Made by a program: the position numbers and the translations under genes. Shown piece by piece: positions 7,672-21,105 of a stretch of DNA of 64,000 nucleotides. The notes under the pieces were generated by a model. It was given only the letters and a program-made list of their open reading frames with translations, made no database searches and was not told where the DNA came from. Every line of letters begins with the position of its first letter. Position 1 is the stretch's first letter. The stretch lies in sequence record OM634661.1. One strand, 5' to 3'.

Positions 7672-7926
7672 TCACCTTTCTTTATCCTTATTCTTTAAAA
7701 TGGTTTTTTCAATTCTAGAAACAGCAACATCAATTGTGTGTTTTAAGAATTCACATGTTCTAAATTCAATTTTGTTATGAAAATCATTTAATCCTATAGT
7801 AGATATAGTATCATATAGAAAACCAAAAAAGAAGTTTGGACTTAAATCAAAATAATTCGATGGAATTTCAATGAATATTTTATCATAAGATGAAGCATGT
7901 CTTTTAAGAGATATAGACTTGCTCAC
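7672..7926 (-). CDS. Hypothetical protein, 84 aa
   Basis: ORF with GTG start, co-directional. Confidence 0.5.
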   Translation of the reverse strand: MSKSISLKRHASSYDKIFIEIPSNYFDLSPNFFFGFLYDTISTIGLNDFHNKIEFRTCEFLKHTIDVAVSRIEKTILKNKDKER

Positions 7927-7928
7927 AT

Positions 7929-7997
7929 TTAGGCCATGATACTTTTCTTTAATAAAAAAGATGGAATATTGATATGAATATTAAAATGAGATGACAT
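7929..7997 (-). CDS. Possible small ORF, 22 aa (MSSHFNIHINIPSFLLKKSIMA)
   Basis: AAGGAG RBS upstream; stop lies just before the next start; hand-translated. Confidence 0.35.
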   Translation of the reverse strand: MSSHFNIHINIPSFLLKKSIMA

Positions 7998-8070
7998 TTT
8001 AATGCTCCTTTGGAATGTATTCTTAGCAGACTCCCCCCTGGGATATCCCACTTATTATAAAAAAAGAGAA

Positions 8071-8352
8071 TTAAATTAAATCTTCTCTTTGTAAAAATAT
8101 TTGATTTAATTTTTGTTTTAGATGATTGAAAGTTTCAAATTTAATATAAAGATTATCTTCATCAAAATCAATATCTTGAATAACGATAATATACTTTCCA
8201 GAGTCACCTCGGTATATGAGCATATTTTGTCCAAATCCAATATGATCATTTAATCTGACAAATTGCTTTTTATCATCATAATCAAAGACAGAATCATTAT
8301 AATAATTTTTCACTAATTGAACAATCTCATCATGTTCTTGTTTTGTCAACAT
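8071..8352 (-). CDS. Hypothetical protein, 93 aa
   Basis: ORF with AAAGGAG RBS. Confidence 0.65.
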   Translation of the reverse strand: MLTKQEHDEIVQLVKNYYNDSVFDYDDKKQFVRLNDHIGFGQNMLIYRGDSGKYIIVIQDIDFDEDNLYIKFETFNHLKQKLNQIFLQREDLI

Positions 8353-8374
8353 AAAATCAACTCCTTTATAAATA

Positions 8375-8411
8375 AAAGATCGCCCTCGGCTTGGAAACTA
8401 AGGCGATCTTT
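8375..8411 (-). terminator. Terminator-like hairpin downstream of the MPRIVVK mini-gene
   Basis: 10-bp inverted repeat AAAGATCGCC/GGCGATCTTT, followed by a T-rich run on the minus strand. Confidence 0.55.
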
Positions 8412-8477
8412 CTCGTTTAATTTGTTATATCTAGGTGTTTTTAGGATAACTAATTCCTATATTCATGATGATATTAA

Positions 8478-8501
8478 TTATTTAACAACGATGCGTGGCA
8501 T
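8478..8501 (-). CDS. Mini-gene encoding the heptapeptide MPRIVVK, identical to the tail of the poly-Ubl protein
   Basis: Minus strand reads AAGGAGGTG-ACTATTC-ATG CCA CGC ATC GTT GTT AAA TAA; 22/24 nt identical to 20259-20282. Confidence 0.7.
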   Translation of the reverse strand: MPRIVVK

Positions 8502-8546
8502 GAATAGTCACCTCCTTAAAAGGATGTTAGATATATATATAGTATA

Positions 8547-8978
8547 TTAGATCTCTTGTACTACTTCTGTTTCTTCAGGTAGAACTGAAATCTTATATGC
8601 TCCTAATCGAATATCACTTTTATGTGGATGAGAATCAACAATTGTTGTTTTTCTTGTTTTAGGCTGCTTTGTTTCAAAAGACATATCAAGTTCATGAAGT
8701 CTTCCAGTTGCAACGATAAATGATCCAACTTGAATCGGGTTCTTTTGACTAACTTCATCAAATAAATCTTTTGGTAAAAATACAGTGAACTCTCCGAGTC
8801 CATCATCAACTGTTAAATAAACAGCTGCTGGGTCATCTTCTGTATTAGGCATAAAAGAAGATGTATCTAAAATAGATAAAACTTTTCCACCTAACTTCAT
8901 GCTCTGCCCAGAATTATAATTTCCTTTAATTGCAGCAGTGAAAGTAGTGACATGAGGCTTAATAATTTTAAAGATCAT
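8547..8978 (-). CDS. OB-fold nucleic-acid-binding protein (resembles the DnaE/anticodon-type OB domain)
   Basis: VYLTVDDGLGEFTVFLP...VGSFIVATGRL pattern. Confidence 0.6.
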   Translation of the reverse strand: MIFKIIKPHVTTFTAAIKGNYNSGQSMKLGGKVLSILDTSSFMPNTEDDPAAVYLTVDDGLGEFTVFLPKDLFDEVSQKNPIQVGSFIVATGRLHELDMSFETKQPKTRKTTIVDSHPHKSDIRLGAYKISVLPEETEVVQEI

Positions 8979-9044
8979 ATTTTAAACAACTCCTTTATCC
9001 TTTAATTCACTCTAAGCATTTTGAATATTAAAAATCAAGTCTTT

Positions 9045-9635
9045 TTAAGAGATATATTCAGAATATTTTCTTGTGACCAAATGTTGAAGAATTTGTATGA
9101 GTTCATGTGCTTTATTTACTAAGTAAACAATGTCCGTAGAACTCAGTTGATGAATGTTTACAATAAGTTCTGCAATAGATTTGTTAACATCATCAAAATG
9201 CAGATACCAAACAACCCTATAATCTTTTAATTTAAGAAAATCATGCATATAACTAATATAATCATCAAGTTGATCATCAATATTCTCTAGAGCTTTTTGC
9301 ATTTCACCAGATATAAAAAACATACCTAAAGCATATTGAAGACTATATGAGAATTCATCCTCAATCATGCTTTGTAATTCTTCAAACTCTTTAAATTGGT
9401 TTCCACATGAAGTCTTAATTTCTTTAGAAAGTTCTGAAAAGATTTGTATATAATATTGAAGAATAGAGTCTTTGATATCAGATCTTTTTTTATCAGAAAA
9501 GATATAGGCTGATATTAAAGACTCAAAAGGATTTTTCTGTTCGGATGTTAAAGTATCATGGGTAGCATGAGATTCAGGTTCAGAAAATAGCTTTTTAATA
9601 TGAAAATAAGCTTCTCTTTCATTTTGAGAACTCAA
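9045..9635 (-). CDS. Hypothetical helical protein, 196 aa
   Basis: ORF with GAGGTG RBS and TTG start. Confidence 0.65.
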   Translation of the reverse strand: MSSQNEREAYFHIKKLFSEPESHATHDTLTSEQKNPFESLISAYIFSDKKRSDIKDSILQYYIQIFSELSKEIKTSCGNQFKEFEELQSMIEDEFSYSLQYALGMFFISGEMQKALENIDDQLDDYISYMHDFLKLKDYRVVWYLHFDDVNKSIAELIVNIHQLSSTDIVYLVNKAHELIQILQHLVTRKYSEYIS

Positions 9636-14975: not shown

Positions 14976-15863
14976 CTATGCTTCTGTTGTTGTCAATTCT
15001 TCTTCATTTTCAGAAACTGGATTCAAAACTTCTTCAGATAAAGTTTCAAACTTATTAAACTTTGTAGAGAAATTATGAAGTTTTGAGTTAAATGTAACAC
15101 AATGAGATGAAATGCCCTCATCTTTTAAAGTAAGAATTGAATTTAAATAGCCAAACATTAATGTTCCAGCTGTAATATTCGTATGAATGTTTTGTGGATT
15201 AGACACTGCACGTTCTGCACAGGACTCTTCTGTTGGCAATTTGTCAGTTCCATCTAAAACTTCTGGGAACATTTCTGCAATACAAGGTGTTCTGAATGAA
15301 ATAGGAGCACCTGACTTTGTATCTTTTGTTAGATAGTTTTTAGAATTATGACCAAGTACAACTTGCCCAGCATATTCTTCATTACCAGCATCAACCCAAA
15401 AACTATTTTCAATACGTTGATAAACATCATGAATGATCTTTCTTGTTTTATTATTATCAACTGCACCAACGAAAACAGGAATTGAATTAGGAACTGATTT
15501 TGCAATGTCATAAAGCATTTTTTCTTCAGTTAAATAAGAGTCAACGATATTAATATCAATACCAAACGCTCTTGCATAGCGCATACCAAGAACTTGCGCC
15601 TTGTTTTTACCAACATCACTTGCAAGAAAGTTTTGTCTAGAGATGTTTTTGGTTTCAACTTCATCTCCATCAATAACAGTTACATAATGAGCAGGATTTG
15701 ATTCAAATAATTTTGAACCAGCTTTTTGATTTTGTAATGAAATTTGACGGAATAAGTTCGGGATAATATAACCGCCATTACCTCCAGAACCAATAATAAT
15801 AAAATGTTTTGACATTTTTGGAAAGGTTGATAATTGATAAGTTGGTGTGAATGAAAGTTCCAA
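14976..15863 (-). CDS. E1/ThiF-family Ubl-activating enzyme (PRTRC ThiF type)
   Basis: GSGGNGG, DGDEVE.KNISRQNF, GAVDNNKTR, WVDAGN, candidate catalytic Cys in ESCAE; TTG start chosen from RBS spacing (ORF track starts at 15872). Confidence 0.92.
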   Translation of the reverse strand: MELSFTPTYQLSTFPKMSKHFIIIGSGGNGGYIIPNLFRQISLQNQKAGSKLFESNPAHYVTVIDGDEVETKNISRQNFLASDVGKNKAQVLGMRYARAFGIDINIVDSYLTEEKMLYDIAKSVPNSIPVFVGAVDNNKTRKIIHDVYQRIENSFWVDAGNEEYAGQVVLGHNSKNYLTKDTKSGAPISFRTPCIAEMFPEVLDGTDKLPTEESCAERAVSNPQNIHTNITAGTLMFGYLNSILTLKDEGISSHCVTFNSKLHNFSTKFNKFETLSEEVLNPVSENEEELTTTEA

Positions 15864-15916: not shown

Positions 15917-16168
15917 TTATTTACTCTTAACAGCTGGATTGAAAAGTTGATACTGTCCATTTTTAATCATAGTTGCAACAATATTACGAATATGTTCAAT
16001 ATCATTATCAACACTTTCAGAATTCACTGTATATAAATCAATTTCAGAAACGAAAATTGTATCGTCACTTTCATGATCAATAAGACTTACATAATTTTCA
16101 AAGTTACTGGCATATTCATCTTCATAATATCCAGTGCTATACTCTTCTTCTTCGTTTACCAGACCTGT
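15917..16168 (-). other. Start-less 83-codon acidic open frame; the -1 frame continuation of the JAB gene
   Basis: Reads TGLVNEEEEYSTGYYEDEY...PAVKSK*; no ATG or RBS at its 5' end; joins JAB if the A10 run at 16168-16177 is read as A11. Confidence 0.65.
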
Positions 16169-17226
16169 TTTTTTTTTGAATCTTGATAAGGATATTGAGA
16201 ATCATGGTAAGAATATCCTTGCATGTAATCATAGCCTTCTTCAAAATCATACGTGTTTGCATATCCAGTCAATGCTTCACCAGCTGAATAAGAATTAGCT
16301 CCACCATAGTTGTAAGTTGTTCTTTTACCTTTCCATGCAGGAGTAACACTAACTGAATGACAATTATACCAAGCAGCTGGATACTCAACATCAGGCCAAG
16401 GACCATTGTAAGGATGGTGTTCTACTTCTCTTTCTTCAGTGATAACTGGATCTTGGCCTTCAAGATTCAATACAGATGTCATAACCGTTTCTGTTTCATA
16501 CATTGGTTGATCAAAAAGATGATGATAAGGAATGTTGATCTTTTTATCACCAGAAACAAAACGGAATAAGAAATCAGGTTGATCTTTTAAAATATTACCA
16601 TAAACGCCATAAAACTGTGTCATATTTTCATTTGAATCATCTGTACTAGACCAGAAAGCATTCATTGTGTGATGAGAATGCGTTTCACATAATGGCGTAC
16701 AATTTTGTCTAAGCCAATGAACCATACCGTCATCTTTAAAGTCTGATAGTCCACCAGAGTTTTTCTGAATCGGACAGTAAATAACAAGCTGACCATCTTC
16801 TACAAGACCTTCAATTGGCTTCGCAGGAATTTTTCCTTGAGCTTGGAAAAACTGAGGAAGCTGAACATTATCATGATTCCAAAAGAATAATACAGAAGCC
16901 TCTGTTTTGTCTCTATTGTAAACATCTTTATAAAAAGATAGCACTTGAAGCCAATATTTAAAAGGAATTTTAGGTACTAATAGTTGGACTCCCTCCTCTA
17001 AAGGAGATAGACCTGGAATAGAAACGTTTTTGCCGAATTCTTGAATTTGTGTAATGAAAATAGAAATTGGTGTTTTTTCAATACGGAAGACACCATTTGA
17101 TGCTGTTACGAAATTAAGCTTTTTGGAAAGGTCTAGATTTTCAAGACCTTCTCCTTTGTATTGTAAATAACCTGTTAATTGAGCTGCTAATTGTTGTTCT
17201 AAACTTAAAGCTAGTGGATTTGTCAT
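16156..17226 (-). CDS. JAB/JAMM metallopeptidase (Prok-JAB, PRTRC type), Ubl-processing
   Basis: Upstream Glu (KTEASVLFFW) and HSHHTMNAFWSSTDD (HxH-x-SxxD). Confidence 0.88.
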   Translation of the reverse strand: MTNPLALSLEQQLAAQLTGYLQYKGEGLENLDLSKKLNFVTASNGVFRIEKTPISIFITQIQEFGKNVSIPGLSPLEEGVQLLVPKIPFKYWLQVLSFYKDVYNRDKTEASVLFFWNHDNVQLPQFFQAQGKIPAKPIEGLVEDGQLVIYCPIQKNSGGLSDFKDDGMVHWLRQNCTPLCETHSHHTMNAFWSSTDDSNENMTQFYGVYGNILKDQPDFLFRFVSGDKKINIPYHHLFDQPMYETETVMTSVLNLEGQDPVITEEREVEHHPYNGPWPDVEYPAAWYNCHSVSVTPAWKGKRTTYNYGGANSYSAGEALTGYANTYDFEEGYDYMQGYSYHDSQYPYQDSKKKQVW

Positions 17227-17256: not shown

Positions 17257-18024
17257 TTACATTCTATTTGACATAAAGTGATCAATTGCTTCTTGAACAT
17301 TCATATTTTCTGAAATCAAAATATCATTTGGAAATGAATATTGAGTTCCTTCTTCTTTTGCTTCTTTTAGTTTATCATCAATATATTGAAATAGATGATT
17401 TGTTCTAAATACACTAACATTTACATTGTCTTTTTCATAATTAAAGTCAACAAACTTTTGACTATCTAGATCATGATTAAAGGGATTAGACAAAAATTGA
17501 TCTGGAACAGTCATAATACCTCTAGAAAAGTTCACATTTGGATAACTAGATTGTGAACCCCAACAAAGCCAAGGGTCACTATTTGTATTCGAAAATGGAT
17601 ATCTGTAAACTGTCTCATTACCAGAAAGAATCTGGCCTTTTAGAGCATATACGCCGCCTTGATGATAAGTTCTTGCTTCTGATCCTTCTTGTTTTCTAAA
17701 ACTTAAAAGCCAAAGAGCATCAGGTACAACAATTTCATATTCAGCAAAGTTTTCATGACTATCATGAACATCATAAGAAACTTTTTTAATATGTTGCGGC
17801 ACTGTAATTGCATAAAATTCTAATGAATTCTTTGACGCATATTTAATACAACCCCATTGACTTGGAAGTAAAGGTGTTTGACTAACAGCATTATCCGAAA
17901 TGACTCGTTGAATATTTTCAACTGTTGTCTTTTTAATAGATTTCATACCAGAAGGTGTCACCTTTTCAATTGTAACACCTTCCTTTTCAATATGAATGCT
18001 TAGTTTAGGATTAGTAACAGACAT
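17257..18024 (-). CDS. Prokaryotic E2 family D protein (PRTRC protein B-like)
   Basis: TPLLP..GCI.Y, YRYPFSNTNSDPWLCWG (candidate catalytic Cys), F.S.PFNHDL; start placed at MSVTNP after AAAGGAGG. Confidence 0.82.
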   Translation of the reverse strand: MSVTNPKLSIHIEKEGVTIEKVTPSGMKSIKKTTVENIQRVISDNAVSQTPLLPSQWGCIKYASKNSLEFYAITVPQHIKKVSYDVHDSHENFAEYEIVVPDALWLLSFRKQEGSEARTYHQGGVYALKGQILSGNETVYRYPFSNTNSDPWLCWGSQSSYPNVNFSRGIMTVPDQFLSNPFNHDLDSQKFVDFNYEKDNVNVSVFRTNHLFQYIDDKLKEAKEEGTQYSFPNDILISENMNVQEAIDHFMSNRM

Positions 18025-20258: not shown

Positions 20259-20966
20259 TTACTTTACAACGATGCGTGGCATACCTTTAACTCCAGCTTT
20301 CACTTCGAAAGTAATTGTATCACCTTCTACAGTTGCTGTTGCATTTTCTAATTCTGGATAGAATTTGCTAAACTCTTCTTGAATTTCTTTAACAGTTAGC
20401 TCATCATTATCAATTTTTAATTCGTTAGTACCGTATTTCACAGTACGAGCCATACCTTTAACTCCAGCTTTTACCTCGAAAGTAATTGTGTCGCCATCGA
20501 CTGTTGCTGTTGCATTCTCAAGTTCAGGGTAAAATTTACTGAACTCTTCTTGAATCTCTTTAACTGTCAATTCATCGTTGTCAATTTTTAATTCATTAGT
20601 ACCATATTTTACTGTACGTGCCATGCCCTTCACTCCCGCTTTCACTTCAAATGTAATTGTATCTCCATCAACAGTAGCTGTCGCATTTTCTAGTTCAGGG
20701 TAGAATTTGCTGAATTCCTCCTGAATTTCCTTAACAGTTAATTCATCATTATCAATTTTAAGTTCATTAGTGCCATACTTTACTGTGCGTGCCATACCTT
20801 TAACCCCCGCCTTTACCTCAAATGTAATTGTATTTCCTTCTACAGTTGCTGTTGCATTTTCAAGTTCTGGATAGAATTTAGTGAACTCTTGTTGGATTTC
20901 CTCAACTGTCAACTCGTCATTATCAATTTTCAATTCGTTAGTACCGTATTTTACTGTTCTTGTCAT
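20259..20966 (-). CDS. Polyubiquitin-like precursor: 4 x 57-aa Prok_Ub (PRTRC protein C-like) units plus MPRIVVK tail, 235 aa
   Basis: Units M[TA]RTVKYG...FYPELENATATV[ED]G.TITFEVKAGVKG; YPEL..A..EG..TF...G.KG signature; start at MTRTVK after GGAGG RBS. Confidence 0.92.
   Translation of the reverse strand: MTRTVKYGTNELKIDNDELTVEEIQQEFTKFYPELENATATVEGNTITFEVKAGVKGMARTVKYGTNELKIDNDELTVKEIQEEFSKFYPELENATATVDGDTITFEVKAGVKGMARTVKYGTNELKIDNDELTVKEIQEEFSKFYPELENATATVDGDTITFEVKAGVKGMARTVKYGTNELKIDNDELTVKEIQEEFSKFYPELENATATVEGDTITFEVKAGVKGMPRIVVK
20283..20966 (-). repeat. Four tandem 171-bp coding repeats (20796-20966, 20625-20795, 20454-20624, 20283-20453)
   Basis: ATG codons at exact 171-nt spacing; many synonymous differences between units. 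Confidence 0.95.
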
Positions 20967-21105
20967 TATAAATTCCTCCGATATAATAAGTTTTTTTTTG
21001 TAAATCATTATTTTATGATGTCTTTATCTAAGAAGACTATATATTAGAATGAGATAAATCACAGATCTCTTCGATCAATCACCCCCTTAAGCTAATAAAA
21101 ATTAT

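Follow-up and report, generated by a model that had tools for sequence, protein, structure and literature searches.

Eukaryotic polyubiquitin precursors, such as yeast UBI4 and human UBB and UBC, carry extra residues after the Gly of their last unit, and these residues are cut off before that unit is activated. We know of no eukaryotic polyubiquitin cap for which a separate gene encodes the same residues. In mobile-element operons that encode E1, E2 and JAB components, PRTRC operons among them, 2-3 tandem Ubl domains have been described as 'reminiscent of poly-ubiquitin' (Iyer, Burroughs and Aravind 2006, PMC1779556); tails and mini-ORFs are not discussed in that paper. Phage-encoded Ubl conjugation cassettes are almost unstudied. 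Here we describe a case from the jumbo Bacillus phage vB_BauM_KLEB27-3 (OM634661.1; myovirus; 216,671 bp; host, Bacillus australimaris; source, a Lithuanian karst lake), in which a polyubiquitin-style precursor ends in a conserved seven-residue cap and a separately conserved copy of the codons for this cap lies behind a ribosome-binding site (RBS). The window, by which we mean the whole stretch of DNA that was analysed, comprises 64,000 nucleotides of this record; within it, 7900-9100 matched the phage genome at 100% identity. Nearly all genes of the window are on the minus strand.

The Ubl cassette of KLEB27-3

The polyUbl gene and the rest of the cassette are arranged as follows:

20259-20966, minus: polyUbl gene gp199, four head-to-tail Prok_Ub/PRTRC_C units, each ending in AGVKG, then the tail MPRIVVK
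20282-20259, minus: polyUbl tail MPRIVVK with its stop codon, ATG CCA CGC ATC GTT GTA AAG TAA
14976-18024, minus: rest of the Ubl cassette (gp196, gp195 and gp194)
17257-18024, minus: gp196, E2-like (E2_D/PRTRC_B-like), a weak match below the cut-off
16156-17226, minus: gp195, JAB/PRTRC_A-like, a weak match below the cut-off, 3 kb downstream of gp199
14976-15863, minus: gp194, ThiF-type E1, clearly of the ThiF family and below the PRTRC cut-off

The four units of gp199 are near-identical and 57-58 aa long (MARTVKYG...FEVKAGVKG). The protein matched Pfam Prok_Ub in four stretches (E=5e-27) and NCBIfam PRTRC_C with 61 bits, above the curated cut-off of 45.95. An earlier, sequence-only reading of this DNA had described the tail as the end of a polyUbl precursor and had spoken of JAB and E1, and this context was borne out: the tail follows four Prok_Ub/PRTRC_C units that each end in VKG, and weak E2-like and JAB-like matches and a clear ThiF-family E1 are encoded downstream. 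Also downstream of gp199 are gp198 and gp197, neither of which has an assigned function. The JAB-like gp195 had a Pfam E value of 1.4e-4 and scored 30 bits for NCBIfam PRTRC_A (cut-off, 101.8), and the scores for ThiF (107 vs. 144.75) and PRTRC_B (18 vs. 131) were likewise below their NCBIfam cut-offs. PRTRC membership was taken to consist in passing the curated cut-offs of NCBIfam TIGR03735-03738 for all components together with a ParB-related protein; no ParB-like gene is annotated near the cassette. The KLEB27-3 cassette is PRTRC-like and is not a member by the curated thresholds, of which only that for PRTRC_C is passed.

As in UBI4, UBB and UBC, the KLEB27-3 units are joined head-to-tail, each ends in Gly, residues that vary among relatives follow the last Gly, and a predicted processing enzyme is encoded nearby. 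Unlike in those precursors, the cap consists of 7 residues that appear to come from a truncated unit, the gene is phage-encoded, and the peptidase is of the JAB type; putative JAB cleavage would take place after each Gly of polyUbl. With the mobile-element operons (PMC1779556) the locus shares tandem Ubl units, the company of ThiF-type E1, E2-like and JAB genes, and matches to the Prok_Ub/PRTRC_C profiles. It differs from them in its 4-6 units, in its place in a lytic jumbo Bacillus phage, in E2, JAB and E1 scores below the PRTRC cut-offs, and in that no ParB-like partner was seen.

Two features of the polyUbl gene concern its translation starts. The longest ORF begins 42 nt upstream of the annotated start (window 20966-21008, minus; MIYKKKLIISEEFI-MTRTV...). 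The annotated ATG (20966) has the RBS GGAGG 8 nt upstream and aligns with the unit starts in relatives, and the shorter, annotated form is probably correct. The AGVKG codons also create an SD-like GGAG/GGGAG about 8 nt before the ATG of each unit, and before the ATG of the tail as well (approximately 20285-20300, 20456-20471, 20627-20642 and 20798-20813, minus). Internal initiation at the unit starts is conceivable; alternatively, these sites may be a by-product of the Gly codons.

Among phage records, homologues of polyUbl and gp184 (the gene upstream of the mini-ORF, see below) were found only in the Bacillus cereus phages vB_BceM_WH1 and Edson, and these are distant (33-50% amino-acid identity). 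Three close uncultured relatives were obtained from Logan assemblies, with polyUbl identities to KLEB27-3 of 98% (SRR19546416), 90% (SRR19546410) and 85% (SRR32006999), and about 18 further distant polyUbl proteins came from a protein collection. Searches with PNK and gp184 for more members of the clade returned the same three Logan contigs and nothing else, and E1-based locus searches returned distant relatives only, all of which lack polyUbl.

Some of these genomes showed features of separate interest. The depositors of WH1 labelled its 5-unit polyUbl homologue (L002 2289-3188) 'virion structural protein_gp211'; if that label rests on proteomics, the particles contain the Ubl, either free or in conjugates, which hints that the cassette modifies virion proteins. 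A 165-kb metagenomic relative (L011 13827-16287) has a 245-aa ORF with faint LAGLIDADG matches between ORFs of 195 aa and 256 aa, the three together occupying the position of the single JAB-like gene of KLEB27-3, and a homing-endonuclease insertion in the peptidase gene of this relative is possible. In KLEB27-3 itself, the DNA polymerase III alpha gene, which is outside the window (OM634661.1 146335-150705; L001 27067-31437), is annotated as two pieces with an HNH endonuclease gene between them, which suggests an interruption of the intron or intein type.

The tail and its stand-alone copy

The tail starts exactly where a fifth unit would. Its residues ATGCCACGCATCGTTGTAAAGTAA align with ATGGCACGCACA---GTAAAGTAT of unit 2, and the position of the unit's Tyr codon is occupied by TAA in the tail. 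The score of the tail against the unit start was reached by 2/2000 shuffles and by 0/551 other windows of the gene. The most fitting account of the tail is that a fifth Ubl unit was cut short soon after its start and that what is left serves as a cap: MARTVKY... would have decayed to MPRIV(V)K-stop, and the product would act as a C-terminal cap for the JAB peptidase to remove, as in polyubiquitin precursors.

Tails of 22 relatives were 1-22 aa long and mostly unrelated to each other (N, E, TRI, IARIFQVK, LLRIQIAYVK, GLEFFKAIAPKLRKK and others), and several from other lineages were also unit-start-like (IARIFQVK, LLRIQIAYVK, MKVTVNLVK... and TRI). MPRIVVK was conserved within the KLEB27-3 clade only, tails elsewhere being unrelated or absent. 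Because a subgroup of tails ending in ..VK recurs in other lineages (IARIFQVK, IASCFQVK, LLRIQIAYVK), some constraint on the cap is possible, e.g., through primed-side recognition by the peptidase. The sequence-only reading had also proposed that the heptapeptide might be a cargo carried by the Ubl in the manner of ubiquitin-fused ribosomal proteins. The KLEB27-3 precursor does resemble UBA52 and RPS27A in carrying, behind a Ubl, a polypeptide that the predicted cleavage after the terminal Gly would free. Unlike theirs, its extension is 7 residues long, cannot fold alone, and is limited to one clade instead of being conserved among polyUbl relatives, as a functional cargo would be.

A second copy of the tail codons lies in the intergenic region between gp184 and gp183, for which GenBank gives no annotation:

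8547-8978, minus: gp184, 143 aa, of no known family; upstream cistron and source of the synonymous-site yardstick
8517-8508, minus: Shine-Dalgarno (SD) sequence AAGGAGGTGA of the mini-ORF, ending 6 nt upstream of the ATG; GGAGG is 9 nt upstream of it
8501-8478, minus: mini-ORF MPRIVVK with TAA, ATGCCACGCATCGTTGTTAAATAA, a 22/24-nt copy of the polyUbl tail
8460-8506, minus: predicted hairpin with an 8-bp stem (8499-8506 with 8460-8467); the AUG is in the stem and the rest of the mini-ORF in the loop
8413-8477, minus: untranslated spacer with a small hairpin (8441-8459) and the anti-SD CACCU (8433-8437)
8364-8412, minus: intrinsic-terminator-like hairpin of 13 pairs with a U-tract, directly adjoining the RBS of the next gene
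8071-8352, minus: gp183, 93 aa, function not known; downstream gene, SD at 8361-8367

The mini-ORF, which reads ATG CCA CGC ATC GTT GTT AAA TAA, is 11.8 kb from the polyUbl tail and agrees with it at 22/24 nt, both differences being synonymous; the longest exact run shared in KLEB27-3 is 17 contiguous nt. When up to 3 mismatches were allowed, these were the only two copies in the window (0 expected; 100 shuffles), and the whole 216.7-kb genome contains the 24-nt sequence at exactly two places. In a local alignment of both loci, 29/33 positions were identical over a stretch that begins at the ATG and runs 9 nt beyond the stop, a score that no shuffle reached; local alignment of both flanks revealed no homology above shuffled controls upstream of the ATG or farther downstream. 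A common origin of the two copies is supported by these comparisons. The sequence-only reading was thus correct in pointing to a mini-gene with the same peptide as the polyUbl tail, and the pair proved unique in the genome. The weak similarity that it had noticed past the stop is real in KLEB27-3, where it is part of the 29/33-nt match, and is lost in 2/3 of the close relatives.

The RBS, which had been called a consensus one, is of the type used by genuine genes of KLEB27-3. Such SD+ATG sites number 41 on the coding strand, and 38 of them open ORFs of >25 codons; among the 41, that of the mini-ORF is the only intergenic site with so short an ORF. Predicted accessibility of its initiation region is low and within the range of real genes (rank 9/41).

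Conservation and layout of the intergenic element

Both loci are present in 3/3 close relatives. The sequence-only reading had supposed that a mini-ORF of any importance could be traced in related genomes, which was true of all three close relatives and of none of the more distant relatives searched; in the close relatives we saw neither absence nor random decay, the mini-ORF and its SD being identical throughout. The peptide is the same in 8/8 copies (4 phages, 2 loci each), and every nucleotide difference is synonymous. The mini-ORF shows no variation in four genomes, its 6 synonymous sites included, whereas the tail has 2 variable synonymous sites (Arg CGC/CGT/CGA and Ile ATC/ATT), indicating that selection acts differently on the mini-ORF and the tail. 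The differences that separate one locus from the other (GTT/GTA and AAA/AAG) are both fixed in 4/4 genomes, indicating that the duplication predates the clade.

For a test of constraint, about 4 kb round the site were aligned in the four genomes, and third-codon positions of gp184 were taken as the yardstick. Across these four closely related genomes, whose sites are not independent, the element from RBS to terminator had 8/157 variable sites, compared with 28/143 third-codon positions of gp184 (Fisher p=1.3e-4), a rate about 4x below that of the synonymous sites of gp184. The variable sites were distributed as 0/24 in the mini-ORF, 1/22 in the RBS region, 3/71 in the spacer (counted over 8477-8407, i.e., the spacer plus 6 nt of the 5' arm of the terminator) and 4/40 in the terminator. 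The SD and mini-ORF by themselves had 1/46 variable sites, again compared with 28/143 (p=0.004). Just after the gp184 stop, 4/21 alignable nt were variable, indicating that the slow change is a local property of the element; the gp183-gp182 intergenic spacer is highly variable. Measured by this yardstick, the element, including the mini-ORF region, is under purifying selection, which makes a purely neutral relic improbable. This constraint does not single out the peptide, because the RBS and the untranslated spacer are equally conserved and the mini-ORF is without synonymous change, and for the mini-ORF it points to the nucleotide or RNA level.

The terminator-like hairpin reported about 65 nt downstream of the mini-ORF was confirmed as a 13-pair stem that begins 65 nt after the stop (stem 8412-8374, then UUUUAUUUAU); a consensus scanner missed it because its hairpin loop is >8 nt. 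The upstream TATACT/TATATA stretch did not fare as well, in that no sigma-70-type promoter was found on the minus strand and no part of the spacer is less conserved than this stretch. No enrichment was seen for the AT-rich motifs TCTAATATA and TATACTAT. Because the gp184 stop precedes it and the first terminator comes only after it, the mini-ORF is at least part of the gp184 transcript. The RBS of gp183 (8367-8361) touches the U-tract of the terminator, so that gp183 must rely on read-through or on a start site within the element. SRR19546410 lacks gp183, with the breakpoint right after the terminator, and the element is intact to the end of the hairpin (KLEB27-3 window 8071-8352, minus, vs. 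the SRR19546410 locus, L009 10433-10677).

A consensus fold of the four sequences predicted 38 pairs, among them those between the SD core AGGUG (8513-8509) and CACCU (8437-8433). The element folds better than shuffled sequences (MFE z-score -2.8), and all substitutions and the one indel inside it fall in unpaired columns of the predicted fold (P ~0.03). Compensatory changes were absent from the four genomes, whose sequences are too similar for covariation to lend the fold support. Neither the folds nor inspection of the four near-identical sequences revealed a convincing antiterminator pairing. The window had no Rfam 15 match at the gathering score, and a permissive Rfam search of 8000-8700 gave chance-level matches only.

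Other candidates for the region were tried and rejected. gp184 had no match in Pfam, NCBIfam or PHROGs, and its PDB sequence match to designed pentatricopeptide-repeat proteins covers the first 25 residues only, is marginal (E=5e-4) and was taken as spurious. A plus-strand ORF across the element (8317-8550; 77 aa; TTG start) has no RBS, and in SRR19546410 a 1-nt insertion breaks its frame. An intron or split gene, with MPRIVVK as exon 1 of gp183, was dismissed on three counts: the 125-nt gap is too short, it contains no Rfam intron, and the element outlives the deletion of gp183.

At the syntenic site in WH1 and Edson, just after the gp184 homologue, there is a 722-nt unannotated stretch (WH1 locus, L002 11989-12710, corresponding to LC597490.1 188488-189209; Edson locus, L003 12581-13302). 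It has no ORF of >69 aa, is 84.7% identical between WH1 and Edson, occurs in no other phage record, and matches no Rfam family. RNAalifold predicted 204 pairs for it, 12 of them with compensatory double changes, 8 of which are in one helix, making the stretch a candidate for a large structured non-coding RNA. The KLEB27-3 element showed no similarity to it.

Readings of the duplicated codons and origin of the copy

Leader-peptide attenuators and 5' stabilisers are familiar from Gram-positive bacteria, examples being the leaders of ermC/ermK, cat-86 and bmrB and the STAB-SD of cryIIIA. The KLEB27-3 element resembles them in having a strong SD and a short ORF before an intrinsic terminator, with the next RBS immediately behind it, and in that the SD and start codon of the mini-ORF are part of a predicted alternative structure. 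The order of parts is that of an attenuator: SD, 7 codons, 65 nt, 13-pair hairpin, U-tract and the gp183 RBS, with no room for a promoter of gp183's own. Unlike the attenuators, the element has no antiterminator that we could find, no regulatory codons and no known inducer, and its ORF is shorter than that of any classical leader and borrowed from another gene.

The account towards which we lean, tentatively and with somewhat less than even confidence, is that a conserved, structured leader/3'UTR element with a cis-acting role has taken up a patch derived from polyUbl. The mini-ORF would be a short paralogous patch of the polyUbl tail that now belongs to a structured RNA in the gp184 transcript and the gp183 leader. 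In the predicted fold, the RBS core would pair with the downstream CACCU and the start codon would be placed in the stem around the ORF. A ribosome that binds the mini-ORF, or briefly translates it, would then act in cis, in a mode likened to that of Bacillus leader-peptide or ribosome-dependent stabiliser elements, and could determine what share of transcription or RNA continues beyond the hairpin into gp183 and later genes; the heptapeptide would be a by-product at both loci. In favour of a cis-acting element we count its low rate of change, the restriction of all changes to unpaired columns, the close contact of the gp183 RBS with the U-tract, the retention of the element where gp183 is deleted, and the gene-like RBS context. 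Against it we count that the fold shows no covariation, that neither a convincing antiterminator pairing nor a promoter nor an Rfam match was found, and that the clade comprises four closely related genomes. The ORF-holding loop is as invariant as the stems, which counts against a purely structural role, and the all-synonymous identity of the peptide at both loci would also be expected of a functional peptide, which counts against the cis-acting element. If the cis-acting element is real, a gene fragment has been recruited into a regulatory RNA. Whether the copy acts in cis or in trans, the element offers expression studies a concrete, small and readily assayed target in a non-pathogenic Bacillus phage system.

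A neutral duplication relic, either a short patch of the polyUbl 3' end or a collapsed polyUbl paralogue that stayed behind in the gp184 3'UTR and seems conserved only through its place in a slow block with a functional terminator, is disfavoured and in our judgement unlikely. Several findings would suit it. The homology extends over only 24-33 nt and has sharp edges, the pair is limited to one shallow clade, and Ubl arrays vary in unit number and commonly have paralogues. The block 9100-8364, gp184 included, is moreover the least divergent stretch of the neighbourhood, and both the SD and the AUG are hidden in the predicted fold. However, synonymous sites in this very block vary at 19.6%, compared with 2% for the SD and mini-ORF and 5% for the element. 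The variable positions just before the element also make the slow rate a local one, and a perfect RBS at the proper spacing has been retained since before the clade split.

Less probable still, to the point of being distinctly doubtful, is the proposal of the sequence-only reading that (M)PRIVVK acts in trans and is made by two routes, translation of the mini-gene and JAB cleavage of polyUbl, as a signal, in feedback on JAB/E1, or against a host target. In the eight identical copies, five substitution events were inferred and all are synonymous, whereas only 15/63 possible changes would be so (P=7.7e-4). The genuine translation-initiation context, the purifying selection on the mini-ORF region and the recurrence of related ..VK tails in other lineages would also suit a functional peptide. 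Three of the five events are in the tail, however (P=0.013), and the other two are not assignable to a locus (P=0.057). The claim that the peptide itself is under selection can accordingly be argued for the tail only; it fails for the mini-ORF, which is free of synonymous drift and whose RBS and spacer are just as conserved. The tail, moreover, is explained as a truncated unit, and the tails of most relatives are unrelated to it. No stand-alone copy of a relative's own tail was found within 10 kb of its polyUbl gene at six distant loci, or at the DNA level anywhere in the WH1 or Edson genomes, and a scan for the MPRIVVK-stop pattern turned up no match across IMG/VR and 185,579 species genomes. 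The pair of tail and mini-ORF is confined to one shallow clade and shows no amino-acid change from which the co-variation suggested by the sequence-only reading could be read. A free cytosolic peptide of 6-7 residues is short-lived, which we also counted against a product acting in trans. A secreted signal of the arbitrium AimP or Phr type finds no match here, the 7 codons leaving no room for a signal sequence, and as receptor candidates beside the mini-ORF gp184 and gp183 match no family. Should the trans-acting peptide be real, Ubl processing would be tied in a new way to a micro-peptide that is also encoded directly, with one route stoichiometric (one peptide per processed precursor) and the other independent (a 7-codon gene). 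It could, for instance, report on JAB/E1 activity or feed back to it. Among bacterial and phage genes that stand alone and yield a trans-acting product, the mini-gene would be the shortest, and the cap would be the first of any Ubl precursor to have its own function.

We regard it as very improbable that the mini-ORF is a bar-type minigene, in which translation of a short ORF frees peptidyl-tRNA and ties up a tRNA or Pth and the sequence of the peptide is irrelevant. Like λ bar and synthetic minigenes of 3-8 codons, it is a stand-alone SD with an ORF of a few codons from which short peptidyl-tRNA would result; its SD is strong, its 7 codons are within the 3-8-codon range in which peptidyl-tRNA accumulates (PMC2490762) and within the 2-8 codons of minigenes in general, and the element is conserved. 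Unlike it, the bar ORFs have two codons and are unrelated to the end of another gene, whereas this mini-ORF is conserved in a structured element; its identity with the Ubl tail and the conserved spacer would be left unexplained. It is also a single copy with a predicted, partly closed initiation region and no evident rare codons, and nothing shows that λ bar-type effects are adaptive. Equally far from convincing is a shared nucleotide-level site of 17-24 nt, bound by one factor or antisense RNA that co-regulates the polyUbl mRNA and the element: the 17 identical nt in KLEB27-3 and the nucleotide-invariant mini-ORF copy would suit it, but drift in the tail shortens the longest exact run in relatives (to 8 nt in SRR32006999), the window holds no complementary partner of at least 13 nt (the 12-mers that exist are AT-rich and no more than chance would give), the sequence has no palindromic symmetry, and the plus-strand ORF that crosses the site is interrupted in one relative.

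As to how the copy arose, relatives commonly have (poly)Ubl paralogues, of 2-6 units, that adjoin the main gene. The mini-ORF may be a collapsed polyUbl paralogue, in which recombination between the first unit and the terminal partial unit would have left RBS, ATG, tail, stop and terminator, or alternatively a short copied patch of the tail. The 5'UTR of the mini-ORF showed no resemblance to polyUbl 5'UTRs. Origin from a collapsed paralogue gains no support, because the UTRs are unlike and because the paralogues of relatives adjoin the main gene, whereas the mini-ORF is about 12 kb off.

Several uncultured relatives have two adjacent (poly)Ubl genes (L014 152-1527; L020 9543-10579; L021 9516-10738), with unit numbers of 4+3, 2+3 and 2+4 and with tails that are unlike; in one adjacent pair, an ending of a single N stands beside a 22-residue tail. 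By comparison of these sequences, unit number and cap are evolving fast in the polyUbl family.
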